Origin: Lytechinus pictus
Lineage: Eukaryota
Direction of reading: 5' to 3'
NCBI RefSeq assembly: GCF_037042905.1
Contig: NC_087248.1
Span: forward strand, 17,918,001-17,982,000
DNA length: 64,000 nucleotides
Part shown: positions 5,906 to 39,711 of the stretch, piece after piece
Position numbering within the stretch: position 1 is the stretch's first letter
How the letters are laid out: every line of letters starts with the position of its first letter
The notes under the pieces: model-generated
Database searches by the model: none
Told to the model about the DNA's origin: nothing
What the model saw: the letters and a program-made list of their open reading frames with translations, nothing else
Position numbers and translations under genes: made by a program

Positions 5906-7453
5906 ATGGCGCCTCGCTTTGGATCACTGTGCTATATTGTAGTTTTGATAGAGCTGTGTCTCGTTCATCACAGTCTCCAGCAGATCAATCCGATTGTAAT
6001 GGGGCCTGTGGACACCGAAGCCGCAGAAGGGACAGATGCAGTCTTCTACTGTAAGGTGCGAACAGGCCAGGGACTCATCGTCTACTGGATCGTTGACCGG
6101 TCCATCGCGGTAGGACCAAACGTGAACAGGAACAAAGCACTGCCGAAGTACGAGATATTCGGGAACCCCTCAAACGGATACTACAACCTGAGGATTAAAA
6201 ACGTCACGCTCGACGACGCTTTCCAGTACGATTGCCTGGTCGATGCTCAAGGTGGGGGATCGAACTTCGAAGCGGGGGCGACGTTGAGCGTCGTCAATCC
6301 AGCCGAAGCGCCAGCGGGCCCGTCATGTCTAGATACAACTGCTAATGAGATCGTGTTGGATGAGGGAGACGAGCTCGGAAACTACCGATGTCGGTCTAGT
6401 GGGGGTCGGCCTCTTGGGGAATTGAAATGGAGCTTGCTCCGCTCGGATCAAACCCTTGTTGATGTGAATTTTGATACGCAGGTGGACTCGTCGCCCTCAA
6501 TAACGGCGACGTCGAGCTCGTACACGATGACAGCGGCAGATCACGAGTCCCAGTTGGCGTGTTCGCTCACGCATCCGAGCCTCAACTCAGATGCTACATG
6601 TACTGTCCCATCGGGCTCGACGAAGCTCATCGTAAGGCACTTCCCCATCATCGACTTCGGTCCTCGTCTTGACGTCCACTACCTTGAGACTAAGAACGTT
6701 ACGATCAGGTGCACAGCTACCGCTTACCCTGGCTTAATCTCCAACGTCCCCGAGCTCACCTTCTCCGATCGTAGCATGCTTCTTGAAACAACACTCGTGG
6801 AGGAAGGGGCCATTGAAGCCGTCATTCGGATCTCCCAACGTTCCGACGTCGGCAAAAGCATCAACTGCTCCGCCACAAATGCGATGGGGACCACGACTAC
6901 GACGCTCGAGATCGAACTCACTCCCGTTCTCCCAGTCTGGCTTCTGGTGGTTCTTATGATCATAGCCTGTCTTATAGTTCTGCTGCTGTCCCTCTGCTGT
7001 TGCTACTGTTTCTGCAACGGCTGCAAACCAAAGCCAGCCGATGACCAACCTGACCTCGGCGACTTCAAGGCTGCCGGGTACGACGTCAGCGAATCTCGAT
7101 CAGCATCCGTGTTCCAGCCCAACGGTTTGAACGGCACCGACCTGCGTCCCATCAACAACGACGGCGACAGTTTCGATGATATGCCCTTGAACGATTACAC
7201 GGAGTATCCCCCGCCTCCTCCCGTCTCCGACACCACCACCGGGTTCAATGACCACGAAACCGGCGAGGTCAATGATGGTTACCTGTCACCGGATGCTGAA
7301 GACAGGTTTCCTCCTATGATCGAGGACGAGCATCTGATGGGTGAAAAGAGGATATCATCCTTCAAACCTGATGACATGAATCTGGCCCCATCTCCTCTGC
7401 CGTCTCTCGATCTAGCTCCGCCTAAACCTATACCAATCGTCGAAGACGAATGA
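5906..7453 (+). CDS. IgSF single-pass receptor 1 (signal peptide, V-type Ig, C2-like Ig, third Ig, TM, Cys-rich juxtamembrane, Pro/Tyr/acidic tail); Kirrel/nectin/CADM-like architecture; intronless CDS
   Basis: 515-aa ORF with good start context (aaaATGG) and a hydrophobic N-terminus. Ig motifs: FYC..YW..YNLRIKNVTLDDAFQYDC; YRC.SSGGRP...LKW..LAC; IRC..INCSATNAMG. TM VLPVWLLVVLMIIACLIVLLLSL is followed by CCCYCFCNGC. Confidence 0.93.
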   Translation: MAPRFGSLCYIVVLIELCLVHHSLQQINPIVMGPVDTEAAEGTDAVFYCKVRTGQGLIVYWIVDRSIAVGPNVNRNKALPKYEIFGNPSNGYYNLRIKNVTLDDAFQYDCLVDAQGGGSNFEAGATLSVVNPAEAPAGPSCLDTTANEIVLDEGDELGNYRCRSSGGRPLGELKWSLLRSDQTLVDVNFDTQVDSSPSITATSSSYTMTAADHESQLACSLTHPSLNSDATCTVPSGSTKLIVRHFPIIDFGPRLDVHYLETKNVTIRCTATAYPGLISNVPELTFSDRSMLLETTLVEEGAIEAVIRISQRSDVGKSINCSATNAMGTTTTTLEIELTPVLPVWLLVVLMIIACLIVLLLSLCCCYCFCNGCKPKPADDQPDLGDFKAAGYDVSESRSASVFQPNGLNGTDLRPINNDGDSFDDMPLNDYTEYPPPPPVSDTTTGFNDHETGEVNDGYLSPDAEDRFPPMIEDEHLMGEKRISSFKPDDMNLAPSPLPSLDLAPPKPIPIVEDE

Positions 7454-9709
7454 TGTCACAATGCTACTTTGTCATTTTGGAGTTCTTCACTCCTTAACAT
7501 TGTTTTTTTATGATTTTGGATAAACCAACAAATACTGGTTTTGTTAAGACGATTCTTTGAGTGTCCAATCAACAATAATTCTATGTAAAATCAAAATATA
7601 TATTCTATTGATGCGTTACACGAAAGTTGTTTAATAACAATGTAAAAATGCATTAATTAGCAGTTGATTTAGTCTCGGATATAACATTTTGTCGTCTCCC
7701 CATATTATCTTATTTTGAAGTTCAATTTCAATTATGCAGCAATAGAATTTCGTCATCACAGTTGATTGATCATTGTATTGATTGCAATTAGGAGATATTT
7801 GCATGATTGTTTTCCTTTCAAACTCAAAACAATACAAAGAATGTTTGTATAGTGTACACGGTCCCGCGTGGTTGTAGCATTGGCCTAGATTCTCACCAAG
7901 CAAAATTCACATTCACCTAATGTTTCATAATGAGGGGGAGGGGGCGTCAGCCGTTAGGTATAAATTCCAGAGAACTGATTACTCAAAAGTGCAACAACTA
8001 ACGCACTTTTTTTCCCTTCCGTTTGAGGTCCTCTTTCACTTTTATCTTGTCTTTCATTGTTATATTTTAGTACCTAATGTTTAAATGCCTTACGAACATT
8101 TAGGATTTTATCCACCATATAGGTATAATGTAATCATATCTCTTTAATGGGAAAATGATTACGCGTTATTGTTATCAACAAGGTTGAAGAGAAAAATGAA
8201 ATGTAACAGAGCGAGACAACACGCAAATATCAAAATGTTTCTCTGTCAAAAGAAGACATGTTAGGTTGAATCAGACTGAATTACATGGCAAAAGACTCGG
8301 TTGAACGAAATTAAATTCCCAAACCCTGTTTTTTTTTAGACAGTATTGCCGAAACGTTAAAAGAAAACAAGATTTAGGGTTGTTAAGATTTTTTGTAGTT
8401 ATCGGAAGAAAAATTATATCCGGGTACGATTCAACTACAATTAATTTCGTTCCAAATGCTTCAATCTGATTAATCACAGACATCAGATACGCAGCTCGAT
8501 CAACCCGATTTTCTGGGGGTGTTTTTCTTCAACTTTGTCTAGATTGATTCTTGTTTAGTCATGTTTCATAAAGGCAGCTTGTCTTTAAAAACATCATGTG
8601 TATTGATGTTTCTGCAAAGAATATATATCATCGATGTATAAATATCAAATTGTGAGAAGTCGTTTTTTTTTTCATTACCACTACTCACAACACGTACGTA
8701 TTATGTATGCCTATATCCCATACTACGCACCTTGAATGGTGAAAAAATGTACTGTTGTCAAGACATCAAAGATGCGTTGCCATATTAAATGTATTCATTA
8801 CGTAACCAACCCAGAAAGAATGATCGAATCATAAAAAGCTAATTTATAATCTGTCACGTGGCTGTGGGGCTTTGATCTATCTTTTTTTACAGCAAGCACG
8901 TGTCACAATGGTGATAGTAGTTTTGGAAAGTGTTGATGAATCCCATTGGAGCATTTTCATGAAATAAATAGTCGGTCATTTATGACAGCGGTTATAAGCT
9001 ACTGAAATCCTTGCATCTGATTGGCTCAGAACAAATTTGTCAGTAAAAACTAATGACTTGGCTTGAAGAAACACTTCAATGGTCTCCTTCAAGACATTGC
9101 ATTTTAGCATTGAATGCTTTACAAATAAAATAACACAGTACATCATTCATTTTCTATAGAAAAAAATTGTATCAATACTCGTTGAGTAATATTGACAATC
9201 AGATATGGTATACGGTATGAAATATGCTTTTTGAAATATATGTATATGAATTTTATTTGATTTATATTTTCTTAAAGATTTACTGTTATCTACGATGATA
9301 AAGCAGTAAGATAACCACGAGGTAAAAAGGCATAGTAAATAATTATCGTGATTTTTAGATAGCAGTGAGAGACAACAATTTCAGCACCAGAATTTTCTTT
9401 TATTTTCGTTGTGTTTTGTAGATAAAATTTATATGCTTGAATTAAGCATTCTGTATATTTCAACGTGTTTTATTAATGTGTTAATTCTCAAATTTATGCT
9501 TCAAAATTGCAATATTGATGTTTGTAATATTTTGAGTATACATTATGTTCATATTTTCAAAGTGGCCTTACAAGAAATTATTCATTAAATGTCGTAAATG
9601 TTTGGTCCAGAAGAAATGTTTGTCTTTTATTTGTTGTGGTTTTTAGGTGTCAATTTGTTAAATCACGTTCCTGATGATTAGCGAGTCAAGACGACAAAAC
9701 AAATATGGC

Positions 9710-15544: not shown

Positions 15545-17661
15545 TTAAAGGAGAATGAAACTCTTGGAGCAAGTTAGCTTTTGTGAAAGCAGAAAAATCA
15601 AATAATAAGATCAACAAAAGTTTGAGTAAAATAGGACTAGAAATAGAAGAGTTATGAGCATTTGAATGTCGAGATCACTAATGCTATGGAGATCCTCCCA
15701 CTGGCAATGCGACCAAGATCTATGATGTCACAGATGAACAACTCTCCCCTTTTGGACACTGAAAATATACCTCAAAACATCTCTTTTTGCTCATTCTAAT
15801 CATATGACAAACGATTCATCAATGATATTTTTTTTTTTCTCTTTGCCTCTTCCTTGAGGATTTATTGTTTCAAAATATTTACATATATACATATTTACAT
15901 AGGAATAACTTTTTTTCAAGAGTCAAATGATATAATATTTATAACAGGAATTACAATATATCAATAATTTTCTTGACCTCTAATACACAAAATTGTTTAG
16001 ATCCGTAATGATTCAAATAAAACTTCAAATATGAAACAAATTCCGTGATCAATCTCGTATTGCTATGATTTAGATTCTGAAGGTTGCATTTTACATAATG
16101 ATTATAAACTACAAACTGAGCAACATTGATCGTCAAATTAATAAGTTCAAATTTTGGGTTTTCTATTTTATACCCAATTAACAATGTTTTCATAGTTATC
16201 ACCATTTCTTCTTTGAAAATGAAATAAATCATCCTCGATATGATTTTCCAATAAACTTTTATCTTTTTGCAAAAAAACAGAAAATGGCCAATGGTCTCGA
16301 TTTCATTACAGATTTCGCATTGATTTGTATTTACAATTTTCCACTTGAACAAATTGTCTCTAGAAGGTAATATTTTATGTAACAGTCTGAAATTGAATTG
16401 CTTAATTCTGTTATCTTTTATCTTTTTGAATTTAAAATGAAGGATATCTTTCCAAACTAAATTTTCTGGCAATTTTAGTTGTTTTCCCCAGATGTCCAAA
16501 ATATAAAAATCGACCTTCTTTTGTTGTAAAAACAACACATAATATTGTTTTGCTCTGGTGCAAGTTATATTAATACGTTCACCAACAGATGTATCAATTT
16601 CTTCTTGTTCTGAAGACTCATTTTGCTTTTCTTTCATCGTACTTATTTTTTCAAGCCAATGAGCAGGAAATGCTTTTTTTAATTTTAAAAATCTAAAACT
16701 AAATACTAAATTATCAACATCAAAAAAGTTTCTAAAAAATGATATATCTTTCCATTTACCTTTATATACAACTTGTTTAACATATAAAATACCAGCTTCT
16801 TTCCATTCCTGAAAATTTAAAGGTTGTCCATTTATTGTAATATTACTATTATTCCATAATGTTTCACGATATATATTTTCAACATTCTGCTCATCTAAAT
16901 ATCGTAATTGAGCCCATGTATATAGAAATTCAATATAAAACATTGGTAAACCCTTTTTTCGACAAAGCTTTAACATGTGTTTTGGATGACAATTCATTTG
17001 AAAACAGTAGGGGATTTCTCCTATGTAACTTAACCAAAACGAGAAAAGTGTTTTCCAGACTGCATCATAATTATTAAAAAAGGAATTTATCCAAGACAAT
17101 ATAAGTGATTTTGATTTCGAATATAGATCGATCATACCAAGACCACCTTCAACTATCGGTCTGACACAAATATTACGTTTAACTTTTTCACGCTTTGAAT
17201 TCCATAAAAAGCAATACATTATCTTATGTAAACCCTTGCATATATAGTCTGGCATTGGTATAACCGAACCAACATAAACGATTTGAGGCACAAGTAAACA
17301 TTTTATAATAATTATTTTACCATAGCATGTATATAGCATAGCATCAATGATATAATGTTGTGAAATCTCTGTACTTGTCCTCTCATAAAGAGAACACCTC
17401 ACCTTGTGATAGACTCTATAAAAGTGAGAATATAAGTGCAATAAGTACTAAAGAAATGAGGGAGTTGTACGTGTGTGACATCACATATCTTGGTCGCATT
17501 GTCAATGGGAGGATCTACATGGCATTAGGGATCTCAATATTCAAATGCTCATAACTTTCTTATTATTCATTCAATCTTCCTCAAACTTTCAACAATATGT
17601 TTCTTTGATTTTTCTCTTTGATATGGATTCAGCTGGTTTCAAGTGTTTCATTCTCCTTTAA
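15545..17661. mobile_element. TTAA-flanked Kolobok/T2-like MITE interrupted by a LINE
   Basis: TTAA|aggagaatgaaac ... gtttcattctcct|TTAA; related copy at 21012-21476. Confidence 0.9.
15829..17341 (-). mobile_element. 5'-truncated L1/Tx1-clade non-LTR retrotransposon (post-RT region plus C-terminal zf-RVT), with poly(A) tail and 12-bp TSD
   Basis: Uninterrupted frame of about 455 codons: GKIIIIKCLLVPQIVY, FLWNSKREKVK, EGGLGMIDL, LWNNSNI, CEICNEIETIGHFLFFC. AATAAA and poly(A) at the 3' end (15829-15866). TSD catcaatgatat at 15817-15828 and 17342-17353. Confidence 0.92.
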
Positions 17662-21476: not shown

Positions 21477-23262
21477 GTCTACTCCTAATCTCTTCTCATT
21501 CTTCTTTCTGACATTACTTCTTCTTTTGCATACATTTCTCTCTGTATCCCCCTTCCATATATACATGGATATGCGTTGCTTGTTTGTATACTGACATTTT
21601 AGTCTATACAAATTCATGTAATTCGGCCTTTGGATGAGAATTGAATTTTATCATAATGAATACCATTTATCTATTTATTTATCTATCTATTTTTTTTATT
21701 TATTTATCTATCTATCTATTTTTGTACCAAGCCCCAATGATGAAATTATAGAATACTGTTCCACTTTTGATTGCTCGAATATCAATTAAATATTTCTTCA
21801 ATAAGCAGAGGACCAAACCTGACAAAAACAAAAACAGCGGACATAACGTGTTCATGTACGTCATCGCACAAAATTTCAAAACCATTTTTAATATTTAGCT
21901 AAATCATAAGACGAATTAGATAACCATGACAACAGGGTATACCTCTACAAATTTGTTGCAAAATATCCCACATCCCCAAAAGGGCCCCATTTTTACTAAT
22001 TGCTATGTTTTGATAAAAACTTCCATAGCTTCATTCGGATGAAACAGATTATAGGTGTTATACGAAAGAAAAGGAAATTCCTTACCTGTTGTTATGGTGT
22101 TTTTCTTTACATCTCGTGAAAGGAAATAAATAAATCTCAAATCTTTCTAATTCACTTTTGAATCTTGTTTTTGCTATGAATTCAGCTAAAAAATAAGAAT
22201 GGATTAAAAGTACCATACGATGAGGGGAATGAAGCCCCTCTGTTTTCTGGTTTTGATGTTCCGCTTAAATAAAGAAATAGTTAACAAAATAACCCTTTTT
22301 TTAATTGAGTCGCACGGAAACCATCACCATTGTCGTCTGATACAAAATGAATAAAGCTTTGAGAACTGTCTCTTTTTCGAATTATTATAATCGGCTGAGC
22401 GACATTTATCATGAAGGAAACGTATTTTTGATAATTATGTTCCATATTTGAAATATGTTATCTTTTTTTTCTTTTCAGATTTGAAAATGGATGCTTGGAT
22501 TTTGGGGTATTTTCAGATAAGAAGGGACGCCCCTCAACCCCACCTTACACCTGCAATTTCATAGCGATTTTTTTTACCCAGAGAAAAGAATATGGCAATT
22601 CTGTTTCACTTTCAAAGCCACCATGGGAAACTTGGATATTCTTCCATATTTCGCTTTTTTTTCTGCTCAAGCCAATCCTTGAAAGGTGAACCTGACTGTT
22701 TTTGTACTCCGCCACAAAAAACACAGTGACCTATATGATTTGCATATGAAACAAATCGAGTCTTGGAATCACACAAAAGAGAACAAATGCCAGGCATTGA
22801 GTCATGATATATCTCTGTTTGCGTGTGGCAAAGGCTCGGGATATCGATCGATCCTTTTGGGATCGGTCAGGCGTGTCGTCTGCGCTAAGACGCAAGTATT
22901 GTGTGGGCAACACAATGGATCATAATACACTTCCAACCAACGGACTGCCGTTTGGAGTACAATCGTGACAATAGAGCATGTTTTGGGTTAACGTTTAAAT
23001 TTCAGCAAGAAGATTTCCTTGCTTTTCGTCGGGAGGTGAAGATAACGATGGTCAAATATTCGTCAACATCAACCGAAAACATGACATGAATCATGTGAAT
23101 AGGAGAATAGCCACAGCATACAGGTAGACTGTGTTATCGTAGGTAGAAAGCAGATCGAAGCCGAAATACACAAGTTAATGAATGGAATAGCCGACGTAAA
23201 CGAGTGTGTATCATCGTCTACTTTCATTTTCTGCAGATGCACACGAAAAATTGAATCTTCAG

Positions 23263-24503
23263 GTTAGTAAGTATCAACATAATTATTGTTTAGATCATTA
23301 TTTTAGAAAAAAACCACGTGATTTTATGAAACTAATAAGGATATGATAGACTCGATGGGAATGTGTACATACAATAGTTTTATTGCCTTAGATACGTTCG
23401 AGTTATGTGATTGATATTGGCATTGAAATGATAATATAATATTCTTGATATTAATTGAAATATACTTGTTTAACAATTTAATAAGAAACTGTGTGAGTGC
23501 AATTACTTTTTTTAGTTGATACAGATTTGCATTCAATCAACTTTGATCGGAATCAAATCCATGGTTGAGGTGTATTTCGAGATAATAAAAATGGTTGTAT
23601 GTCCGGGGGGGAGGAGAGGGTTGACAACGAGGATGGATGATTGGGCGAGCTTTGTAGAATTATTGATTTGGTAACGAAAGAGAAGACGTTGGTGATGGTG
23701 GGGATGTTGACCTCCGCCATGGATAATGATGACGGTAAAGCCTATAGTGATGACTCTAGTGATGATGATGGAAATTTTGATGGTGATAGTTATGACGACG
23801 ACGACGATGATGCTGACGATGATGGTGACAGTGGTGATGATAGTGATCACGATGGTGATGGTGTAAATGTTGATTATGATGATGGAGGTATGGTGATGAT
23901 TATGAGGTTGATGGCGATGATGATAATTGTGATGTAAGTGGTGTTAGTAAAAGTGGCTAAAGTGGTGGTGGTGTTGGTGGTGGAGATGNNNNNNNNNNNN
24001 NNNNNNNNNNNNNNNNNNNNNNNNNNNNNNNNNNNNNNNNNNNNNNNNNNNNNNNNNNNNNNNNNNNNNNNNNNNNNNNNNNNNNNNNNNNNNNNNNNNN
24101 NNNNNNNNNNNNNNNNNNNNNNNNNNNNNNNNNNNNNNNNNNNNNNNNNNNNNNNNNNNNNNNNNNNNNNNNNNNNNNNNNNNNNNNNNNNNNNNNNNNN
24201 NNNNNNNNNNNNNNNNNNNNNNNATTGTGACGAGGGGTAATCGTGTTAATTGTGGTGATGACAGTGATGATGATGGTGATGAGATTGTGATGACGACGAT
24301 ATGCCGATTTTGGTGATGATCTTAATAGTGGTGATGATAACAAGAAATTATCATGACGATGATGATGTGGTGATGCCAATGATGCTGCTCTTAATGATTA
24401 TCACGATGTTAATGTCTATGCTGATTATAATGGCAATTTTCATGATTCCTTTATCTTTGATACTCATTATATCATACATCTTTTGTCTTTCATTTTGTTT
24501 CAG
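23263..24503 (+). other. Probable 5'UTR intron of IgSF receptor 2
   Basis: Donor cag|gttagt and strong acceptor ttttgtctttcattttgtttcag| 124 nt before the ATG; the intron contains the GAT array. Confidence 0.55.
23690..24420 (+). repeat. Degenerate (GAT/GGT)n microsatellite spanning an assembly gap (N 23989-24223)
   Basis: Visible trinucleotide repeats on both sides of the N run. Confidence 0.95.
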
Positions 24504-24627
24504 TCACTGGTACGCTAATCATGCCCATGGTCACAGGATAACATCAGCGAGGTCTCCATCGTTTCCACATCTTATGCGACTGGCAATACTTATGTGACTG
24601 ACAGGGATTATGAAAATATAAATCGCA

Positions 24628-26169
24628 ATGGATGCTTATAGCAGACCGTTTCATCTCGCATTGTTCTTGCTATCATGGTGGGATGTATCACTCGTGGCGA
24701 GCCAATTTGTTCTCCAGCCAACAGACGTAGCGGTTGTTTTTCCTCGAGCGGTAACACTTGACTGTGTCTTCGATGGGGACATAGTATCAAGGCCGGTTTT
24801 CTGGCACCGCTACACCGGCGATCCCCCGGTCAAGGAAGAACTCTACAACACGCGAGACAACCGCTTTTTCATTGCCGGTGACCGCAACGACGGTCATTAT
24901 AACCTCTTCATTAACGCGACGCGGTTAAGCGATAGCGGGCTCTACGGCTGCAGTTACGGAACCGCGTCAACGCGGAACGCGACGCTGACTGTGCTTCCAA
25001 CATCGTGGATACCCGTGTGCGAGAAGACACCGGAAAGTGAGCGGACGCTCGTGGGTGATAGTGTCGAACTTGGGTGCTCGTCTACGGGGTCGTCGTCGAC
25101 TTCGCTTCAATGGCTACGTAATGGTGCGCTAATTGGCCCGGGTAGTATAACACGCGATGACACCATGGTGAGTGTGTCACACTTTGAAATAGTACCCAGT
25201 GACTCCTCTATCACCTTCACGTGTAATGCCTCCCTACCAGGGCTCGACCAGCGCTACCAGTGCACGCTCGGTCCGTACCCCGAGAGCGATTCGAACTCGG
25301 GAACCACTGCCCTGATTCCGTTCATCATCGTCGGGATTCTTAGTGTCGTGGTCATCCTCCTCTTTGTCATCGTTCTCTTCATTCTCTTTCGACATCGACG
25401 GTGTCGTTTTTGTCAGGAACAACCAGTGGAGCCCCAGATGGTTCTCGATGCCGAGGCCATCGCAGCTGGTCGTGGCTTTACAACCATAATCCGAGATGAT
25501 GACGATGATGATGGCGATGGCGATGAGGCTGTCGGAGGGGATAGTGTTGACAATCCCACCCTGAGTGACAGCCAACCAGATCTCTTATCGTCCATTATCA
25601 GTCCTTCAACCATAGCTCAGAAATCCCCCAACAGCACCTTACGTCAAAACATGAACCACAACAGGGAATCGGTGGCGCCGAAGAAGCCATCCGATGTCGA
25701 AAAGCTTCGACCTTCTGAACTCAGAAGAATGAAGAAAAAACGCACGCTCTCTAGCAGATCGGGGCAATCTCAACGAGAACCATCACCTTCAGTCTCGTCA
25801 TCAACCTCTTCAAGCAGGGACGCACCAAAATCAACATCCCCGGTGAGTGTCGATCACAATATAACTCCACGCAGCACGTCTACGACATCAATCGACAATC
25901 AAATTGACCAGTCACAGCCCGGAACGTCACAGGGTACAAACCATTCCGGTATTAACAATCTCGATGCTTCGGTCGGGAGGAAAAACAGATTCACAAGAAA
26001 AAAGAACTCTAGGAAGTCGTCAAGTCCATCGGGCGCTTCATCTACTTCCCCTCGGAACATCTCCGAGCCAGGAAGCAGTGCGACGCGACAATCGGAATCG
26101 GTCATCTATGCCGAGCTAGACTTCAGCAAGAACGTTGGTATGAATATACTCGGTGATGAACATTTGTAA
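24628..26169 (+). CDS. IgSF single-pass receptor 2 (signal peptide, two Ig domains, TM, long Ser/Thr/basic disordered tail, C-terminal ITIM-like VIYAEL); intronless CDS
   Basis: 513-aa ORF. Ig motifs QFVLQP..VTLDC..FW..YNLFINATRLSDSGLYGC and VELGC..LQWLRNG..FTCNA. TM LIPFIIVGILSVVVILLFVIVLFILF followed by RHRR; ends ..ESVIYAELDFSK.. Confidence 0.93.
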   Translation: MDAYSRPFHLALFLLSWWDVSLVASQFVLQPTDVAVVFPRAVTLDCVFDGDIVSRPVFWHRYTGDPPVKEELYNTRDNRFFIAGDRNDGHYNLFINATRLSDSGLYGCSYGTASTRNATLTVLPTSWIPVCEKTPESERTLVGDSVELGCSSTGSSSTSLQWLRNGALIGPGSITRDDTMVSVSHFEIVPSDSSITFTCNASLPGLDQRYQCTLGPYPESDSNSGTTALIPFIIVGILSVVVILLFVIVLFILFRHRRCRFCQEQPVEPQMVLDAEAIAAGRGFTTIIRDDDDDDGDGDEAVGGDSVDNPTLSDSQPDLLSSIISPSTIAQKSPNSTLRQNMNHNRESVAPKKPSDVEKLRPSELRRMKKKRTLSSRSGQSQREPSPSVSSSTSSSRDAPKSTSPVSVDHNITPRSTSTTSIDNQIDQSQPGTSQGTNHSGINNLDASVGRKNRFTRKKNSRKSSSPSGASSTSPRNISEPGSSATRQSESVIYAELDFSKNVGMNILGDEHL

Positions 26170-26915
26170 TTATATTATTCTTTTATTCCAAAGGCAACTG
26201 AAGGACATCTTGTGCCATTATTGATCATGGTATTGAGGTACAGATGATTGTGTTAGTTTTTTTTATTGATAACCTTTTCTTTAATGAAAAAAAATGCTCA
26301 CACACCCACAGCACAGGTACAATGAGAAATTTGTGTCATTGTTAATATTTGTGGTAGTTTCAATTTCACAGTTCAGAATCAGATTGTCTGTGCACCCTTT
26401 CTCGGCAAATTTAGCTTATCAATATGTACCCTATTAACCTATTGCAAAGGTTTTATTCGCATACAAAAATATTTGCAAAAGCGATAGTAAATTGGATTAT
26501 CGAAATTTCATAGATAATATACATTTACCTCGATAAATAATTGTTTCAGGAAATGTTTAATCAACAATATGTCTGAATTGTGGCATTGCAAGAAAACATT
26601 TTATTCAAATCACTTGACAAGGATACATTCGTGTCTGATTAACCTCATGATGTATAGGCCTACTGTAATAGAATGGAGTGATCCTCAAAATCATTTGAGT
26701 TTCAGTAATTCTAAAATTTTATGTCACAGAATATGGGCATTGAAATTTATAAGATTAATTTATAATCTTATGTTTGTTATTGGTTTTAAGTTTTTGTGTT
26801 GTTATTCAACCGTATTCAACGTATTATTTACTTATTATTTGTGTCATTTTTACCCATTTTGTGTGTGCAAGCTCTGATTAATCCTTCCTCTTGAACTAAG
26901 CCGGGTTTTCCCTCA

Positions 26916-27220: not shown

Positions 27221-27815
27221 TTACAGGGATGCTCCGGATTGAAAATAATATGATGTAAACAGATAAAGAAGAATCGGATAAACAAAACACTAAAAATTTG
27301 ATCAAAATCGGATAAGGAATAACAAAGTTATGGCATTCTAAACATTTGCATTATTCCTGTGAAACAGTTCTAGGCATGCCATCATGAATATTCATTAAGC
27401 AAATTGATGATGTCATAATCCCCACTTGTTCTTTTGTATTTTATTATATGAAATTAGGTTAATTCAATTTATTTCTACCAAGAACTGAAAAATTTGGATT
27501 GACAACTGATTTAATGCACTAGATATTGATTGCTGCAACTTATTTCATTATGAAGGAGACACATTGTTCACACATGTATGGAAAAATGAAGCAATTATGA
27601 TTTAATGTAATAACATAAGAAAAAGGAAAGTTGAGATGTGACATCATCAGCCCACCTAATGAATATTCAGGATGACGTGCATATAACTATTTTCACAAAA
27701 TATTGCGTAACTTTAAAATTCAATAACTTCGTTATTTGTTATCCGATTTTGACGAAATTTTCAACATTTAGCTAAGTGTATTTTACTCTATTTATTTAGA
27801 TATGTATATCCCTAT
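27221..27815. mobile_element. Kolobok/T2-like MITE, same family as 35026-35753
   Basis: Long shared blocks (aaaatcggataa, catgaatattcatta, gtgacatcatcagcccacctaatgaatatt) and internal inverted repeats. Confidence 0.85.
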
Positions 27816-28640: not shown

Positions 28641-30648
28641 AAGTTGGTGAAAAAGAGAAAGAAAACAAAGAACAAGAGACGAAGATGATTTACTATAGGT
28701 GNNNNNNNNNNNNNNNNNNNNNNNNNNNNNNNNNNNNNNNNNNNNNNNNNNNNNNNNNNNNNNNNNNNNNNNNNNNNNNNNNNNNNNNNNNNNNNNNNNN
28801 NNNNNNNNNNNNNNNNNNNNNNNNNNNNNNNNNNNNNNNNNNNNNNNNNNNNNNNNNNNNCTTTCTCGGAAATAAGCAAAGAAACAAACGGGGGGAGGGT
28901 ACTTTGCGCCCACTTTATTGCAATATAGAACGATTGTCCCATTAATATTAGTTACCTTATATCACGCTTATTTGGTCAACTCTTACTTCGAAATACGATA
29001 TTAATCTGAAATCACAATTCAAAGTCGGTATATTAAGGCTTAAATGAACAGTTGTTAGCATAAATACAAATGTAAGTGCATTTGGAACGGGTATATTATG
29101 CAGACAATTTTATCCTGAATAAACAGAATCATTATCGTCCACTCTTTACAAAAGATCAGTCAATAATACACATTCCTAATAGAATAATTGAAACGTTTAA
29201 TATACCAAGGTCTGGTTTGTTATCAGAGAACAAATCATATTTACATATCGTTTAGCTGTGGTATTCATGGTGATATTCATCTCGGTATTTCCTCCCCCAT
29301 TTTTCTATATGTCTTGGTTTCTCTCTTTCCTCCCCTCTCTCTCCTCCCTGGCACATTCACACAACCAGGCACCCTCACACACACACACACACCCTCAACC
29401 ACCCACACCCATCCGTCACACCCTCAAACACAGTGGCGTAATGAGTCCAAATTTTTAGGGGGCTAGATTTGGCTGATGGAACATAGTTATAACAAGTTGC
29501 AAACAAACGAAGCGAGAGAGCAAAAAGAGGGGGAGATGGCGTGGGGACACAAAGAGCCGAAGAGAGGGAGAGAGTGAGAGGGGGAGGGGTGGAGGGAGTT
29601 ATTTTTTAAGTTTTGTGTTCAAGTTTCATATACTTACACCTATCATTTAATAATACAGATAATAATACTAAAACGCATATATATGATATCATCGACACAA
29701 AATGATTATGCCATTAGAGTGAGATGACAAGCTAAATATCAAATAAAAACTGGACGATAGTATATTTTACATCCCAAATAGATGATAATGATGACATTTA
29801 AATCAAAATTCGTTCTATTAGGAGTAAGAATCAACAAAATAATACAACATATATATAAAAAGAAAACGGAGGTGGTAATATATACCTATTAAATTCAGAG
29901 CTATTAATTCTACAGTGCTATAATAATCTACTTGCAAGAGAGTCCCTGAAAGTTTCAATAAAATAAAAGAGAGGAGTGTTCTATTGGGTGTGTCGATTTA
30001 TTCATTCCGGTCGTTACGACACAAAAGTCAGAACAGATAATCTACAGAGTAATTGACATGGTTGACTACCCCAAACCATTTTTTCCCCGCAGCTCAAACC
30101 TACACACACACGGTCTTTACTGATCGAGTGCATTCGCTCGTTTGCTTTCTTTATTCAAATTCAATTGTCCCATTGTAGAATCTCGTCTATTGTACAAAAG
30201 GGTGAGTCAATTGTATTGTTGAGAGAACGGTTGTGAGTGTATAATTGTGGGAGTGCGATCTACGTAAGACAGCCGGTGAATTTATGGGGAAATTGAGGGA
30301 AAATCTCGCGATGCGCGAGAAATGAGCTGGTGGTCTACTGTACACAAACATACACCGTGCATACAGGAGCGCCGAATGAAACCGGTGGATTGGCGTTGGA
30401 TTCGTGCTACCGCCACTTGTTGAGGACATTATGTGCGTTGTTTCTTCCAAGATACCAACAAAAAGGTGCAAATTTTACGTTTGGGATATCACTTTTCGAC
30501 TTACAATGGGAGGACTAAATGCAGAGATGTTCTAATGCGCATCTTAATATCTAGAAACGACTCATTCTTCGAGGAAAACGTCACATGTTGACATAATTTC
30601 CCCTATCACTTTCGTGTGTGGTGATTCTGACAGCTGCCTACATCAATC

Positions 30649-31557
30649 ATGGCGTCAACCAGTAATCATTTTTTGACGCTTTTATTTTCTGCTATGTGCT
30701 TTATAAGTTGTTCCTCAGGACAGTATTTCTCTGTGCAGCCACAAGATACAGAAGTCGTTGTCGGGAGCAAAGTTACGATGACATGTCGAGTGTTTAACCG
30801 TCCGGAAGGCTCGCTTGTGTATTGGATAACGCCGGCTGCTACCAACGACTTCATAGGACCCGATTATGATGTACCTTCCCGCTATATAAATAAATACGAG
30901 ATCATTGGTGATCCAAGAATCAACGACTATAATCTTGTGATCAATGATGTAACGGCTGAAGATGATGGAGACTATATATGTCTTTTGTTTCAGCCTGGAA
31001 GGGGAGATCTGAACGTCGCGCCGACGCAGATTGCCCAGACAAGAGAGGCTTCGTTGACGGTGGCGACGTTGAGCCCGACCGGCGCACCGGCTTGCTGGGC
31101 TTCCCCAAGGCGCACTGTCCATGTCGGGTCAGACATCACGATCTATTGCGCCTCTATCTTTACCAACAACTCCCTGACGTGGAATCAAGATTCGAGTTCG
31201 TTGACGTCGTCGTCTAACTCGACAGCGACGATCCCGACGTTAATCATGACGACGTTTACGGCTGAAGCTTCGATGAACGAGGCACGGTTCACCTGCGCGT
31301 CGGAGTCGGACCGCAACAGACAGTGTCAGATCGTCCTCGATGTTACCTTCCCTCCCGAAGTCACAATCGAACCTGTTGGCGAGATCAGGGCTGGTCATGA
31401 AGGGCGGTTTCGGTGCTCGGCTACGGGAAACCCTAATGTATTCGTCTATTTTTGGAAGTACAATGAGGAGGTCATCGAGTACAGATACCATCGTCGATTC
31501 AATAGGGCTATCCTTGAAGAGAGCAATACGATCTTGGCCCTCCCTGATATGGATGAG
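30649..31557 (+). CDS. IgSF receptor 3, coding exon 1 (signal peptide, Ig1, Ig2, first part of Ig3)
   Basis: ATG in atcATGG context. QYFSVQP..VTMTC..YW..YNLVINDVTAEDDGDYIC; ITIYC..LTW..FTC; FRCSATGNP..YFW. Phase-0 donor GATGAG|gtaata. Confidence 0.9.
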
Positions 31558-31999
31558 GTAATAATGACGAATTTAGACCGAATTATGTTATTCATAATTA
31601 TATCACGTGAATGTGATAATCCTCGCCTAGAGTCAGAGTGGTAACATGCAATGACTATGAGATGCATTAATTTGATGTTTTTTTAAAGCTCCCCTCCCCT
31701 AATTCATGTCAAGACTGCAATCATTAATTTTGATATTCATTTACAATTTTCATGTAGATCTACACAAGTCATGTAGGTCTACTCTCACAGACTACCGTGG
31801 GTGATTGTGGTATTGTTAAATATGAATACGAATGCCATAATGACGGGGGTTATTTCTATCTTTCTGTCCTATTCATTTTCGTCTGATGATATTGCTTACT
31901 GCTCATTGATCACATACAAATTTATCCCGCCATCATCACTCTAATTTTGACGATTTCAACTTGGCACATGTAGATCCCAGCCCAGAGTATCTTCCATGT

Positions 32000-32060
32000 G
32001 AAGAACTGGAACGGTCTACCAGCTGATGAAGTGGATGCTGCAACCCTTGACACATTTATT
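32000..32060 (+). mobile_element. Small CR1/L2 LINE ORF2 C-terminal remnant
   Basis: Translates WNGLPADEVDAATLDTF, like the WNxLP..V.A.SL..FK end motif of CR1/L2 ORF2. Confidence 0.55.
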
Positions 32061-32654
32061 CGTGATGAGGGTCAGCATATTAACGTCATAAGCAGCTCTG
32101 TCATAAGCGTATTGTCTTTATAAAAAAAAAGAACAACATCGATGCCTAGCTTTAAGGCAGCGCAGGAACATGAGAAATGCTCAAGTTAGGTTAACAGTTG
32201 TGTCATAGTTATCAGTTTTGGAACGTAGGACAACAATAAGAAATTCAAGACAAGTTAATCTTCCTCGCATTTATGTTGTTTGCCATAATTTATACGAAAG
32301 AGAAGAAAAGGCCATTGTAAGTTATATTTCATATTCTATACTCTCTTTTCTGGTGACTTGTAATAAAATAATACAATGATCACAAATTGTTATTTTCGAC
32401 GTCTGCATATTGATATTGTTTTATTTAATGTGGCAATTCTTCCATTACTGATATATATCTTTAAAATTTATCCCGTTACGTCGAGACCTAGCGTTACAAT
32501 AATTTCTAAGCTTTAGAATACATATTTGAATAACCTACTACTTTACTATTATCTTCGGACATGTTAGCCTTGGCGAGAAAATATTAGTTTCGTCTCCGAA
32601 AATGGAATGTTGACATAACGCTTCCATTGTCCGTTCTGCATGGGCATGGTGAAA

Positions 32655-32721
32655 CTTCTTCTTCTCCTTCTCCCCCTCCTTCTCCCTCTCCCCCTCCTCC
32701 TTCTTCTTCGTCACCTTCTGT

Positions 32722-32757
<36 letters not shown>

Positions 32758-32797
32758 CTCTTCTTCTTCATTATCATCATCATCATCTTCTTCTTCA
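32655..32797 (+). repeat. (CTT/CCT/CAT)n microsatellite in intron 1 of receptor 3
   Basis: Visible repeat. Confidence 0.95.
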
Positions 32798-34076
32798 ACA
32801 AAAAACCATAAAAGCCAAACGAAGTAAATATTTAATTGTACACAATTTTCCAAGTACATAATGATACAAAAAACCAAAGGAACTTGACAATATTTTCGTC
32901 AAAACACCCCCATAAATTGTATTTTCTCTGCAATAAAAGGGAAATGCAATTGAATACCTGTTTTGTGTTTGAAATTTAATGTATAACACGCAAACTATTG
33001 ATATCATTTTTCTAACAAATTTGGTTGAATACCCCCCATTCTTATTCTCCATTTTCAGTTCAAACTCTTTCTTCCTGTATCAATTCATGCTTGGTTTGAG
33101 CTGCCCGACTTCCTTTTATCAATATCAATCATTATCCATGTTATCGAAATGATTAGCAAATTTTATGGCCCAATTTTCCATATGCTAGATGAGTTTTCGT
33201 GTTCCTTGAAGGAATCGAACTAAGTTTTACACAACTGGAATAAAAATGTTCCTAGAAATAAAACTCAAAAGAAAGGCTGATTGCTTGACATCGTCAGTTC
33301 CATGATATGAATCGTCACCACGTGACAATTTCGTTAAAATGAATGAATGAAAAAAAAAATGCCATAACTGGTAATTTAATTTCGGAAGCAATTCCCAAAG
33401 ATTAGGCCCTATACTGCACAAATATCCAAGTAAACTTTTAGCTATGAAATCACGAAAAGTTTGTCCTCATACCATGTCATGCAGTTGATGCTAATATTTT
33501 TGTCTGATTCTGAAGTTAGTTTTCTTAGTAAATGTTTAAAGAGTACGTGATTGAATGACAAAAGAAAGTCGCTGTGAAAACGAGGGTGCCGCACGAGCTG
33601 AATAAATACCACCCTATTCTTTTGAAATATTTGGCCATGTGTATGGCCTTGTATGCAAGCGAGAATACGAAATTAGCTAAATAGGGCTAATATCAAAGTG
33701 AAATTAAACGTATGCTTTGTATATAATCTCAAATGATAAATCATAGTTTGTGCGCGACACACATGTGGTAGGTATAGGATTTCATATTGTTTTGAATTAA
33801 AAGTATTTGATGTAAATTACCACTGACCTCGCAAGTACCACTAGAATTGGCAAAATGGTGGTGAACTCCATGTGATTTCATTTAGATTAATTGTTTCTAA
33901 TCAAATATAAATACATAATCAAATCAAGCGAAAATCCCGTTCTTAAACAAGAGCTAACTTCATTTTATCCGACAAACATGATAATAATTATGGGGTGCAA
34001 TATCATATCTGTATATTCCCCGATGTATTATGACTTCAAGAATGGAAGTTAATGAACCATGCTTATTAAAGTTACA

Positions 34077-34304
34077 CACACTTAAAATGTTGGACAACAT
34101 ACTGTCCACTGTGTTGGGTAATGTATGTTGGTAAAAAATATTTATATTCGGGGTAATTATTACCCAATTGAGCAAATTTATAACCCAATTATTACCTTTT
34201 TATAACCCAATTTGGACAGATTTTAACCAATAGTTGTGTGGACAGTATGTTGCCCATGCAGTGATGGTTAAAAATTAGGGTTTTGCCCAACCTTTTTAAG
34301 AGTG
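34077..34304. mobile_element. CACT-type palindromic MITE
   Basis: caacatactgtccac ... gtggacagtatgttg ... ttttaagagtg. Confidence 0.75.
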
Positions 34305-34318
34305 CAGAGTATTAACTT

Positions 34319-34780
34319 CTGGGGCCCGTTTTATAATGTAAAGCGTTACAACTACTGTAATTTTGCCATTAGGGCAACTACTATGATAATGTTGCTCAAC
34401 CGCCAATAAAAATAAATGTTTGTATGGTAGTTTCTAGAATTAAAAAGTTACAATTGATATAGCTCTTTGTGAAACGGACCCCTGATTTTCCCTAAGAAAG
34501 ACCGAGATTCTGCGATTTAGCAAGCAAACAATGCACTCATTAAAAAGAATATTAAAGATCTCGTAGAAAAAAAAATCCTCTAAAACTTCTGGAAAGTTTT
34601 GAAAATCCAGAGAGATTGAGGTCAGTAATCTGGGTCCGATTTCATAAAGACTTGTTTTAATAACAAATGTACACTTTCTAAAACATATTTACCATCAGCC
34701 AATCAGATAGAAGGGTCTCAGTAGCTTTTAACTGTTATTGCAAATTTGTATTTGTAACAAGTTTTATGAAACGGACCCCC
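34319..34780. mobile_element. Two adjacent short MITEs with GG(G)(C/T)CCGTTTCATAAA-like TIRs (34319-34484, 34630-34780)
   Basis: ctggggcccgttttataa..tttgtgaaacggacccctg and ctgggtccgatttcataaa..ttttatgaaacggacccc; relative at 49934-50075. Confidence 0.7.
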
Positions 34781-35025
34781 TAGTGTGTATTTTCACAAGC
34801 AATTCCCCGAATTGAATGTCGATTTACATGTAAAAATATCCCAAATATCACGGTTTGCCCGACATACTGTCTCACATAGTAGCGCACCCATTCCCCAACC
34901 TAGGGGTGGAAAATGGGCCATCGCCCCTGTTATATTTCAAGTAGTGAGAAAAAAAAAGAAGAAAGACGTAAGATGAGTATAAAAAAAGATAGAAACGTGA
35001 AAGAAATGTGTCTCGTAACTCTGTA

Positions 35026-35753
35026 TTAAAGGGATGGTCCAGGCTGAAATTATTTACGACTTAATAAATAGAAAATAATTCACTGAGCAAAATGCCGAAA
35101 ATTTCATCGAAATCGGATAACAAATAACAAAGTTATTGAATTTTAAAGTTTAGCAATATTTTTGTGAAAACAGTCGTCATGAATATTCATTAGGTGGGCT
35201 GATGATGTCACATCCCCACTTGTTCTTTTGTTGTTTGTTGTTGTTGTTCATAGTTATCTTGACATGTATTTTAAACTGCAGGGCGCCTTTGTAAAGCAAT
35301 TTTAAGAACTGAACAGGCCTACCCTGCAGTATAAAATAAATAAAACAAAATAAATAAATAAATAAATAAATTTATTATATGAAATTAGGTTTATTCAATT
35401 GTTTTCCTCCAAGAACTAGAAAAATTGGATTGACAACTGATTCAGTGCATTAAATATTTATTGATGCAACTTATTTCATTATAAGGGAGACATATTATTC
35501 ACACAAGTATGGAATAATGAAAAAATTATGATTTTATGTAATAACATAAGAAAACAGAAAGTGGAGATGTGACATCATCAGCCCACCTAATGAATATTTA
35601 TGACGACTGTTTTCGCAAACTATTGCTAAACTTTAAACTTCAATAAATGTATTATTTGTTATCCGATTTTGATGAAACTTTCGGCATTTTGCTCAGTGAA
35701 TTCTATGCTATGTATTAAGATATAACTATTTTCAGCCCGGACCATCCCTTTAA
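35026..35753. mobile_element. TTAA-flanked Kolobok/T2-like MITE carrying an internal LINE-tail insertion
   Basis: TTAA|agggatggtccaggctgaaa ... tttcagcccggaccatccct|TTAA. Confidence 0.92.
35231..35370 (+). mobile_element. Short 3' end of a CR1/L2-type LINE or SINE with (AAAT)n tail, inserted into the MITE
   Basis: Absent from the sibling copy at about 27435 (cttttgtattttattatatg). Has stem ctgcaggg..ccctgcag and an (AAAT)n tail. Confidence 0.7.
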
Positions 35754-36342
35754 CTCGTTTTATTCCATTGAAAAAATTGGAAAAAAGTGATGTCAAATTT
35801 AGATCATGCCCCTCCTCACAAAAATAGCATGTAACTGCGCAGGTTTTTAGATGAACTTTTTTCTTTCGACAGGATTTAGCTTAAGTTTGAATGTCTTATT
35901 AATGTGTTCCGCGTTAATGTCGAGTTTAACAAAATATGGAGATGTTTCTGAAACAGGTATGCCTAAGTTTGGCGAATCTTCGACACATAAACAGGAAATG
36001 CTGGATTACGTCACCCTCCTAAACTCGCGGATTATTCTTGATTGCTATATAGAATGATTTTTTTTATCCGTGAAAACAGCTCCTTAAATCATCGGTTGAT
36101 TCCCGTATAATCAGGAGGAATGATGGATTTTAGTGGTCACGGAGATCATTTGCTGTTACCACAATGACCACGCAGAAAAGAGCGGTGATGATCGACGGAC
36201 ACGACCACCCCCTTCTCCATTTGTAAATTAATTTGTAAAAAATATTGCAATCAAGTCGGATTGCTTACATCTTTATATCTATCATGTCTATATCAGTATT
36301 ATGCATATAGCTAATAACATATTTTCGTTGAATGACGTGCAG

Positions 36343-36687
36343 GACGATGACGCCGCTCTCCTCGAATGCACGGCGGTCAACGAACACGGCCAGGGTGTCA
36401 GCACTTTCCCCATCCGCGTGGCCAGCAACAACACCACCTCCGTCATCGCCTGGAGCCTCTGCGCCATCATCGTCGCAATCATTCTCGTGCTCCTCATCAG
36501 TTTCTGCTTCTGGAGATCGAGGCAGCACAGGAAACTGGAGAAGCTCTCCGAGATTCGTCGAAGCACTCGACCACGCTCTGGTCCCATCGAGACGGAGATG
36601 AATGGCAATGTCAACCCTGCTTTTACTGGATTCTCTCATCTTGAAATAGACTCCGTCGGTTACGGACCGGACGTCCAACCATACCAG
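36343..36687 (+). CDS. IgSF receptor 3, coding exon 2 (end of Ig3, TM, proximal tail)
   Basis: Acceptor gtgcag|GAC. DDDAALLECTAVNEHGQG completes the Ig3 F strand; TM VIAWSLCAIIVAIILVLLISFCFW. Phase-0 donor TACCAG|gtaatt. Confidence 0.88.
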
Positions 36688-36754
36688 GTAATTACGCGTT
36701 GTTTTCAAACCATCTATAAAATCCAGTGGCATAATAATGAATCACACCAGAGGA

Positions 36755-36786
<32 letters not shown>

Positions 36787-37264
36787 GAACAAAGCGTAAG
36801 AAATAATTTTTCGAAAAAGTCGCAAGTGAGCGAGCAAAAACATAATCCCTTATAAAATGGACTTTACTGTTGTGACATGTTTTAACAAAATGTCGAGAAA
36901 ATAACTTAATATTTTACTTGTTTCCCCTAATTTGATTCCTCTCTTTTTCCTATCTCTTTTCCTTTTCCTTTTCGGTCGTGGAACCTTTTTTCGGGGGGGG
37001 GGGGGGGGGCAACTCCCAATGCCCTATCTGTATCCCAGTGATAAAATCAAATGTTAATTTGTGTCGATGGTGCCTTTTAACAGTTAGAAAAGGGACTTGA
37101 ATCCCGCACTCGATTCTCGAGCTAAAAAAAATCAAATATTTGAAATTTAGATAATTATCAATTCAGGGGGATAATGTAGGCCTACTCAACATATGCCATT
37201 TTTTATAAGATCGATCAAATGCGAAGGGGTCCGTTTTGTCATCTCTATCGTTTTCTTTCCCCAG

Positions 37265-37384
37265 TCGAGGCCCAGTGAGCGGGATTACGACACGGGCGAA
37301 CCCAAGCCTATCCCGGCAAGGCAGGGAAGTAAAAGTGTTGATACCGACAGCGATTACATCGCCATGGACGTCGACGAGGAAGTG
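37265..37384 (+). CDS. IgSF receptor 3, coding exon 3 (cytoplasmic, contains DYIAM)
   Basis: Acceptor ttttctttccccag|TCG and donor GTG|gtaagg; 120 nt, phase 0/0. Confidence 0.85.
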
Positions 37385-37549
37385 GTAAGGATCGTGGGTC
37401 GTTTTACGACTTCGACTCGATTATGACGACGACGTCGAGTCTCCAATCAGAGTTTAAGGTTATGTCAGAAATTGCCCAATAAGAGGCTACTACATGCAGA
37501 TCTTTACTTTTTTCAAGTGTGGTCCTGTTCATGAAGTGATAAATAGGCT

Positions 37550-37699
37550 CAGTGGCGCATCCCGGTAGGGGCATAACCGGCCCGTGCCCCCCTCCCTTTT
37601 AAGAGGCACACAAAAGATATTTGTCATGCACATGCAAGTGAAGAATTTCTACTGTACAGTATGCCCTCCCCCCTTTGGAAAATCCTTGATCTGCCCCTG
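37550..37699. mobile_element. hAT-like MITE (CAG..CTG ends, near 8-bp TSD)
   Basis: cagtggcgcatc ... gatctgcccctg; flanks aataggct / aatatgct. Confidence 0.7.
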
Positions 37700-39477: not shown

Positions 39478-39711
39478 ACCCAAACCTACACCTACCAAGT
39501 CAATCCCAAGTTCGAGGAGTACAGAAACAAAGCCAGTTACGACGTCAGCTACGACGACGAAATCGATGCCGTGATCGAAGACAAGAAGCCCCTTCCCCAG
39601 AACGATCTCGACCTGGAGAAGGAGTTGGTTGGCGAGCTCAGCATGTTCTCTGACTACGATAAGAACTTCGATGAGGATGCGGAACCCGTGGTCGTGAGCA
39701 CGGAACTATGA
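39478..39711 (+). CDS. IgSF receptor 3, terminal coding exon (Tyr-rich, ends -STEL, class I PDZ-binding motif); full protein about 535 aa
   Basis: Long pyrimidine tract then cacgcag|ACC; GC3-rich codons; TGA at 39709-39711. Confidence 0.85.
   Translation, partial: TQTYTYQVNPKFEEYRNKASYDVSYDDEIDAVIEDKKPLPQNDLDLEKELVGELSMFSDYDKNFDEDAEPVVVSTEL

Follow-up and report, generated by a model that had tools for sequence, protein, structure and literature searches.

The kirrelL gene of echinoderms is reportedly one of a family of intronless Kirrel-like genes that has expanded in these animals. Among the IRM proteins (Kirrel/Neph, SYG-1, Rst/Kirre, and nephrin/SYG-2), Kirrel has five immunoglobulin (Ig) domains, and nephrin has eight to nine together with FN3. 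In every echinoderm examined kirrelL is intronless, and it is needed for fusion of the skeletogenic cells; the supplement of the same study contains KirrelL, Kirrel2L, Hypp1164, and IgTM sequences from several echinoderms (Khor and Ettensohn 2022; PMC8903837). We analyzed a window of 64,000 nucleotides from the sea urchin Lytechinus pictus (NC_087248.1, positions 17,918,001 to 17,982,000 of the forward strand; chromosome C4 in our labeling), which contains three intact Ig receptor genes, here called R1, R2, and R3, all on the + strand. Our analysis supports, as by far the most probable reading, that R1–R3 are anciently separated paralogues within the echinoderm, mostly single-exon family of Kirrel-like receptors (KirrelL, Kirrel2L, and Hypp1164). 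They are uncharacterized members of a known family; what is unexpected is their deep microsynteny.

An initial annotation of this DNA had described three co-oriented Ig receptor genes with a common ectodomain and unrelated tails, and had proposed a paired-receptor or allorecognition-like locus. The three genes and their shared orientation are borne out, with the following features:

5906–7453, + strand: R1 coding sequence, one open reading frame (ORF) in a single exon, 515 amino acids (aa), NCBI "nephrin-like," XP_054753122
6146–6235, + strand: R1 signature of the first Ig domain (Ig1), KYEIFGNPSNGYYNLRIKNVTLDDAFQYDC, located by pattern scan
23229–23263, + strand: 3′ part of the R2 exon in the 5′ untranslated region (UTR), from RNA reads, with a GT donor after 23263
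24628–26169, + strand: R2 coding sequence, one ORF in one exon with the acceptor at about 24503, 513 aa, LOC129258908
26101–26118, + strand: R2 motif VIYAEL (aa 492–497), resembling an immunoreceptor tyrosine-based inhibitory motif (ITIM), inside the conserved C-terminal peptide VIYAELDFSKNVGMNILGDEHL
30649–31557, + strand: R3 coding exon 1, with signal peptide, Ig1, Ig2, and the first half of Ig3
36343–36687, + strand: R3 coding exon 2, with the remainder of Ig3, the transmembrane helix, and the start of the tail
37265–37384, + strand: R3 coding exon 3, tail
39478–39711, + strand: R3 coding exon 4, tail with YTYQVNPKF, the class I PDZ-ligand end VVSTEL, and the stop codon

Pfam finds only Ig domains in the three products (three in R1, two in R2, and three in R3), with no FN3 domain in any of them and no match of any kind in the tails. 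All three proteins combine the Ig domains with a signal peptide, a single transmembrane helix, and a tail 150–260 residues long. The signal peptide and three Ig domains of R1 are followed by the helix, a juxtamembrane cysteine cluster, and a proline-rich tail; R2 has a signal peptide, two Ig domains, the helix, and a 260-aa tail rich in Ser, Thr, and Lys. The four coding exons of R3 have GT–AG borders and phase 0 throughout, and their 535-aa product corresponds to NCBI LOC129258907. Introns are missing from the coding sequences of R1, R2, and all three crinoid genes described below, yet R2 has an intron in its 5′UTR (23264–24503). The three introns of R3 are found in L. pictus and Strongylocentrotus purpuratus, and at least the first of them in Diadema; because the crinoid R3 orthologue (L031:15161–16681) is a single exon of 506 codons, as in most family members, intron gain in a once-intronless R3 is suggested. 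Just 5′ of the acceptor of R3 exon 2, in the intron 31558–36342, there is an open frame (36301–36342; NNIFSLNDVQ) that resembles the end of exon 1 (SNTILALPDMDE).

The proteins share a homologous Ig1–Ig2 module, but at 28%–31% identity the "common ectodomain" is distant homology only, and the Ig domain counts differ. In BLASTP, R1 and R3 are 31% identical (E 1e-12, Ig1), R2 and R3 30% (E 5e-8), and R1 and R2 28% (E 7e-4, Ig1–Ig2). The tails have no mutual similarity in pairwise BLASTP. As first written for this locus, the Ig1 pattern fails, since its spacer from G[ND] to YNL is one residue short; the version with a five-residue spacer (which was derived from R1, R2, and R3 themselves) has exactly three matches in the six-frame translation of the window, one per gene, at 6146, 24862, and 30892. 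A looser form of the signature matches eight of the approximately 20 paralogues elsewhere in the L. pictus genome, and the signature is therefore a family trait.

Six-frame searches of the L. pictus genome, one with each ectodomain, returned 14–22 places each, mostly uninterrupted frames of 500–1100 codons, and the three genes are not each other's best matches. The best non-self matches of R1 are on contig C5, with R3 ranking fifth (E 1e-7) and R2 not in the list; neither R1 nor R3 is in the R2 list; and the best matches of R3 are on C2, with R1 ranking twelfth. The best paralogue match of R1 and of R2 alike is Kirrel2L. Most of the 23 paralogue loci that were retrieved encode complete one-ORF proteins with signal peptide, Ig domains, transmembrane helix, and tail, and a profile of the R1/R2/R3 Ig1–Ig2 module (208 positions) matches 20 of them, 17 near full length (E 1e-16 to 1e-36). 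Three of the loci, all matched by this profile, are the L. pictus kirrelL (L009, C5:12.37 Mb), kirrel2L (L007, C5:8.47 Mb), and hypp1164 (L025, C4:17.75 Mb), so named after their L. variegatus counterparts in the PMC8903837 supplement, which they match almost exactly at both termini and in the Ig1 motifs. The possibility that the trio itself contains kirrelL was rejected, because the published Aj-kirrelL regulatory sequence is missing from the crinoid trio locus. A literature search by the LOC and XP identifiers of the three genes found nothing.

Other family members flank the window on C4: hypp1164 about 170 kb upstream, a partial Ig1–Ig2 exon at 17.89 Mb (L011), and a gene for a 565-aa protein at 18.05 Mb (L026). 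With the trio they make up a loose six-member cluster within 300 kb (C4:17.75–18.05 Mb).

The nearest solved structures are IRM proteins. In profile and single-sequence structure searches, R1 is closest to domains 1 and 2 (D1–D2) of SYG-1 (1e-12), followed by Rst and Neph1; for R3, Rst, SYG-2, and Kirre rank near the top. The R2 ectodomain, modeled with AlphaFold (predicted local distance difference test score 87), has Rst D1–D2 as its first Foldseek match, and SYG-1 and Neph1 are among the first eight.

The tail motifs named in the initial annotation are all present: CCCYCFCNGC at aa 364 and YTEYPPPPP at aa 431 in R1, the ITIM-like VIYAEL in R2, and ten tyrosines and a C-terminal STEL in R3. 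Among echinoids the tails are conserved to the same degree as the ectodomains. R1 retains its cysteine cluster, KAAGYDV, NDGYLSPDA..FPPMIEDEHLMGEK, and proline runs but not the YTEY tyrosines; features that it shares from crinoid to urchin are the juxtamembrane cysteines, (G/R)Y(D/Q)V..SR, and (G/A)Y(L)SPD. R2 retains FRHRRCRFC, PQMVLD, KSPNSTLR, and an invariant VIYAELDFSK.V.MNI.GDE.L. The last 80 residues of R3 are nearly identical in S. purpuratus, and SDYI, Y.YQVNP.F (NPxF), and the class I PDZ ligand S-T-(E/D)-L are kept from crinoid to urchin. Neither a charged transmembrane residue nor an activating counterpart of the ITIM (ITAM) was found in the three proteins or their orthologues. The description of the genes as uncharacterized adhesion- or recognition-type Ig receptors stands, with three distinct conserved tails, and its specific paired-receptor or allorecognition reading does not.

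R1, R2, and R3 each have 1:1 orthologues across echinoids. The L. pictus R1 protein is identical at 96% of positions to that of L. variegatus, 76% to that of S. purpuratus, and 54% to that of Diadema (where NCBI names it "syg-1-like"); the values are 95%, 78%–80%, and 53%–54% for R2, and 94% (exon 1), 78%, and 50% (exon 1) for R3. Word-indexed protein searches with the three proteins returned echinoid orthologues only. An exhaustive sequence search was made with an R2 profile, and its top 150 matches are dominated by giant multi-Ig proteins; R1 and R3 were traced beyond echinoids through the crinoid and sea cucumber loci.

Gene order is kept across echinoderms. In L. variegatus R1–R2–R3 lie in the same order and on the same strand, spaced by about 15 kb and 5 kb. 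In S. purpuratus the end of R1 and the start of R3 are about 27 kb apart on one strand, and between them lies an intact 514-codon R2 ORF (L003:1918–3459, AAGJ06000021.1) that is 78% identical and ends in VIYAELDFSKNVGMNILGDEHL; this ORF is missing from the called genes of that locus. R3 lies 9 kb downstream of R2 in Diadema setosum, and an R3-like gene lies 3.2 kb downstream of R2 in the sea cucumber Apostichopus. In the crinoid Anneissia japonica, a stretch of 13 kb holds three co-oriented single-exon genes in the R1–R2–R3 order of urchins: the first is R1-like (BLASTP 8e-31 to R1 versus 2e-13 to R3), the middle gene is the R2 orthologue, and the third is R3-like (9e-51 to R3 versus 0.01 to R1). 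In a maximum-likelihood tree of Ig1–Ig2, the crinoid genes join the R1 clade (99/97), the R3 clade (95/86), and the R2 clade (91/90). Crinoids branch before the sea star–echinoid split, and the crinoid trio therefore places the arrangement before the echinoderm crown group; judging from these loci, the three genes appear to have remained neighbors from a time before the crinoid lineage diverged from the other echinoderms. The sea star–echinoid split is dated to 450–500 million years ago (PMC8903837).

R2 is the most widely traced of the three genes, with orthologues in all five echinoderm classes and the hemichordate Saccoglossus in the exhaustive profile search. It is transcribed from the + strand, at a depth of 50–100 over 24500–26173 in three L. 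pictus RNA-seq runs, with about 6% of each run read. VIYAEL lies 17 residues before its C-terminus, with Y494 as the motif tyrosine, and the surrounding peptide VIYAELDFS.NVGMNI is kept as far as the hemichordate:

Brittle star Amphiura: KVIYAELDFKKPVGLNILPDV
Sea star Asterias: RVIYAELDFSKDVGPNII
Crinoid Anneissia: TVVYADLNFARSLGLNITKDEHL
Hemichordate Saccoglossus kowalevskii: DDPVIYAELDFSRNVGMNIM, in an alternative frame

The motif also occurs in a second brittle-star-like sequence (P0033) and in the crinoid Antedon. The ITIM consensus [SIVL]-x-Y-x-x-[ILV] is thus conserved as VIYAEL or VVYADL in R2 of echinoids, crinoids, sea star, brittle stars, and Saccoglossus. In the Saccoglossus R2-like gene (L032:11380–11525, GL013066.1), the annotated C-terminus crosses an A-rich tract; the other frame at the same spot encodes DDPVIYAELDFSRNVGMNIM and then a stop, almost identical to the urchin peptide, and an assembly or gene-model frameshift likely hides the ITIM-like end. 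Because this alternative frame encodes a near-identical peptide, the R2 C-terminal motif is probably older than the echinoderm–hemichordate split.

A motif of the form h-Y-A-x-L-D is present once in R2 and was not found in R1 or R3; it also occurs, usually in tandem, at the C-termini of Kirrel2L, Hypp1164, and IgTM, and the "ITIM" of R2 is therefore a family heirloom, not a novelty of this locus. Several of the tails encoded at L007, L009, L017, L020, and L025 carry one to three ITIM-like motifs (for example, LVYADL and VAYAKL in kirrel2L, and VLYENI, LKYVEL, and VVYTEL in L020). To go by these tails, tyrosine-motif signaling may be a general property of the family.

The initial annotation had suggested checking dN/dS and allelic polymorphism in Ig1, and the results speak against an allorecognition-like locus. 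Nonsynonymous to synonymous rate ratios (omega) were calculated by the Nei–Gojobori method for L. pictus against L. variegatus and against S. purpuratus. Whole-gene omega is 0.14–0.24 in R1, R2, and R3, indicating purifying selection, and Ig1 omega against S. purpuratus is 0.10–0.14 in all three; against L. variegatus, R1 and R3 have an Ig1 omega of 0.06–0.07, and R2 has 0.46, with just ten substitutions behind it. Ig1 ranks with the most strongly conserved regions of the genes. Two L. pictus alleles of R2 differ at about ten of 513 residues, none of them in Ig1. Among the 31 best-supported R2 variants in RNA reads, 19 are synonymous and two are in Ig1, one of which is nonsynonymous (I52V); a further 92 less-supported differences lie along the whole read-covered stretch, and the sample amounts to a few individuals.

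Several observations weigh against placing R1–R3 as old Kirrel-like paralogues with a signaling-competent R2. The similarity of R1–R3 to SYG-1, Rst, and Kirrel is modest (16%–30% identity), and the R2 model matches SIRP and antibody chains almost as well as Rst, SYG-1, and Neph1. The last 29 residues of R2 have as their top match among all PDB sequences the MPZL1 (PZR) peptide VIYAQLDHS...SESVVYADI, which we take to be an SHP-2-binding ITIM pair, at an E-value (0.81) that is not significant. R2 of the sea cucumber Apostichopus does not have the tyrosine motif. A search within 10 kb of R2 turned up no R1 or R3 orthologue in Asterias, Amphiura, or Saccoglossus, larger distances not being covered. 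Evidence of transcription concerns R2 only and comes from RNA runs that carry no tissue label. Finally, the backbone of the family tree is unresolved: R1 and R3 group together (89/88) in a smaller tree and not in a larger one, and R1, R2, and R3 as a single clade are not rejected by the approximately unbiased test (p 0.33). The trio may have arisen by ancient local duplication.

R1–R3 are predicted to be type I membrane proteins that present outward a V-like Ig1 and a C2-like Ig2, as in D1–D2 of SYG-1, Rst, and Neph1; a third Ig domain follows in R1 and R3, and all three proteins continue with one transmembrane helix and a long tail. Ig1 may make trans contacts between cells, as Kirrel-type proteins do and KirrelL is proposed to do, and the three tails may couple such contact to different intracellular machinery. 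In R1, palmitoylatable cysteines, proline-rich stretches, and the conserved GY(L)SPD could provide links to actin or to SH3-type adaptors. VIYAELDF, the lone candidate phosphotyrosine site of R2, resembles the ITIMs of MPZL1/PZR and could act by recruiting an SHP-2-like phosphatase with SH2 domains. The NPxF motif and the C-terminal S-T-E/D-L PDZ ligand of R3 may anchor it to junctional scaffolds, as in Neph/Kirrel. We infer binding partners, phosphorylation, and cell type of R1–R3 from sequence and from these likenesses.

The order and orientation of the trio, kept from crinoid to urchins, and the adjacency of R2 and R3 in Diadema and sea cucumber raise the question of whether the genes form a functionally coupled module that is held together by selection, either through shared enhancers and co-expression or with R2 as an ITIM brake acting in cis on adhesion signaling by R1 or R3. 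Conserved non-coding blocks that run collinearly in L. pictus and S. purpuratus, both within the trio and in its surroundings, would fit such a module, which would add to the placement of the genes in the Kirrel-like family. We nevertheless consider it rather unlikely: the 10 kb around R2 in sea star, brittle star, and hemichordate hold neither R1 nor R3, adjacency can last by chance in slowly rearranging genomes, and adjacent IRM paralogues in Drosophila are same-type duplicates, not binding partners. Bolder, and in our judgment improbable, is the proposal that R1–R2–R3 are a functional cassette approximately 500 million years old, in which two Kirrel-like adhesion receptors that differ in their scaffolding tails flank an ITIM co-receptor, R2, that is co-regulated with them, works at the same cell contacts, and recruits an SHP-2-type phosphatase to tune R1 or R3 signaling. 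If it were true, inhibitory ITIM signaling coupled to Kirrel-type adhesion would predate the echinoderm–hemichordate split.

That R1 and/or R3 are the urchin orthologues of bilaterian Kirrel/Neph or nephrin, acting as a Kirrel–nephrin heterophilic pair, is very improbable. Such orthology could account for the best solved relatives (SYG-1, Rst, Neph1, and SYG-2), for the names that NCBI gives to R1 and its Diadema orthologue, and for the PDZ-ligand end of R3, which is as in Neph/Kirrel. R1 and R3, however, have only three Ig domains, their coding sequences are single-exon or nearly so, and echinoderm paralogues such as Kirrel2L match them at least as well as IRM proteins do (E 1e-9 to 1e-12 for the latter).

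We see next to no chance for a paired-receptor or allorecognition locus, that is, recent gene copies sharing a ligand-binding ectodomain and differing in their signaling tails, since the clustering, co-orientation, common Ig1 motif, different tails, canonical ITIM-like site of R2, and further family members within 170 kb on the same chromosome are outweighed by the low ectodomain identity, the separation of the genes already in the echinoderm ancestor, the lack of any ITAM or charged transmembrane residue, purifying selection, Ig1-poor variation, the finding that the three are not each other's best matches, and 1:1 orthology, which the initial annotation had itself named as contrary to its proposal.

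The remaining features of the locus concern its non-coding and flanking DNA. Three runs of N occur in the window, two of them within the trio region and both of these in non-coding DNA:

23989–24223, no strand: assembly gap inside the R2 5′UTR intron (23264–24503)
28702–28860, no strand: assembly gap between R2 and R3, with flanks about 680 bp apart in L. variegatus

The first gap is placed in the intron because stranded RNA reads of the R2 exon that enter at 24499–24503 carry the letters of 23229–23263 upstream. At both gaps the flanks are collinear and in the same orientation when compared with the L. variegatus locus. Past the R2 stop, from 26175, RNA reads of three runs (X19–X21) depart from the reference, with new letters that are absent from the window; RNA depth is near zero after 26175, while contigs of another run follow the reference to about 27100. 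As there is no GT at this point, splicing is disfavored, and the divergence is probably a structural haplotype difference in the R2 3′UTR. A high-copy repeat at 27374–27800 has a contig word depth of about 19,000, reads from both strands, and opposite-strand joints, which suggests an inverted-repeat mobile element. Between R1 and R2, a 496-codon ORF with a zf-RVT domain (E 3e-8) on the − strand (15951–17441) is a retrotransposon fragment.

Upstream of R1, a 160-codon ORF with a hydrophobic C-terminal segment (996–1478, − strand) has about 125 bp conserved with the S. purpuratus neighbor of R1 (L004:1–3992), whose product matches Amidase_2 (PGRP-like). Downstream of R3, S. purpuratus has an Integrase_H2C2 gene that is the counterpart of a GIN-like integrase gene at 47198–53273 of the window. 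Since flanking genes on both sides are matched in S. purpuratus, synteny reaches beyond the trio.

The analysis removes a tempting but mistaken immune or allorecognition reading of this locus and assigns three unnamed urchin genes to the KirrelL family, in which the founding gene causes skeleton-forming cells to fuse. A row of three genes whose order and orientation are kept from crinoids to urchins is a rare case of microsynteny outside the classic developmental clusters and hints at shared regulation. The R2 peptide is among the most deeply conserved ITIM-like peptides in invertebrate deuterostomes and offers an entry to dating phosphatase-recruiting Ig receptors, in a genetically tractable urchin.

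Compared with known systems, R1–R3 resemble KIR/LILR/SIRP and Hydractinia Alr in being clustered Ig receptor genes with differing tails; the hallmarks of those systems (near-identical ectodomains, activating partners with charged transmembrane segments, rapid lineage-specific turnover, and hypervariable N-terminal domains) are absent from them. Like the SHP-2 recruiters MPZL1/PZR, SIRP-alpha, and PECAM-1, R2 is an Ig-type type I protein with a sequence near its C-terminus, VIYAELDFS, that fits the ITIM consensus; unlike MPZL1/PZR, it has one motif and not a tandem pair engaging both SH2 domains, and the ectodomains are related by the Ig fold only. Among solved structures, IRM proteins come out on top for the R1 and R3 Ig1–Ig2 modules and for the R2 model, and they share the Ig1 signature RY.I.G....G.Y.L.I......D...Y.C and, with R3, a PDZ-ligand C-terminus. 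The closeness of D1–D2 to SYG-1, Rst, and Neph1 holds for all three proteins, with a small margin over other V–C2 folds in R2. They differ from IRM proteins in having two to three Ig domains and not five, or eight to nine plus FN3, in their identity of about 16%–30%, and in their single-exon genes.

Within the echinoderm KirrelL family, R1–R3 are none of the four published skeletogenic-cell genes, R2 combines two Ig domains with one tyrosine motif in place of a tandem pair, R1 and R3 are without the motif, and echinoid R3 has three introns. In other respects the layout is that of the family: the Ig1–Ig2 module directly follows the signal peptide in a type I protein with a long tail, and the coding sequences of R1, R2, and crinoid R3 are each one exon. 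The hYAxLD motif of R2 recurs as LVYADLDL in Kirrel2L, LVYAQLD in Hypp1164, and LHYAEIDW in IgTM (LVYVELDF in brittle star).

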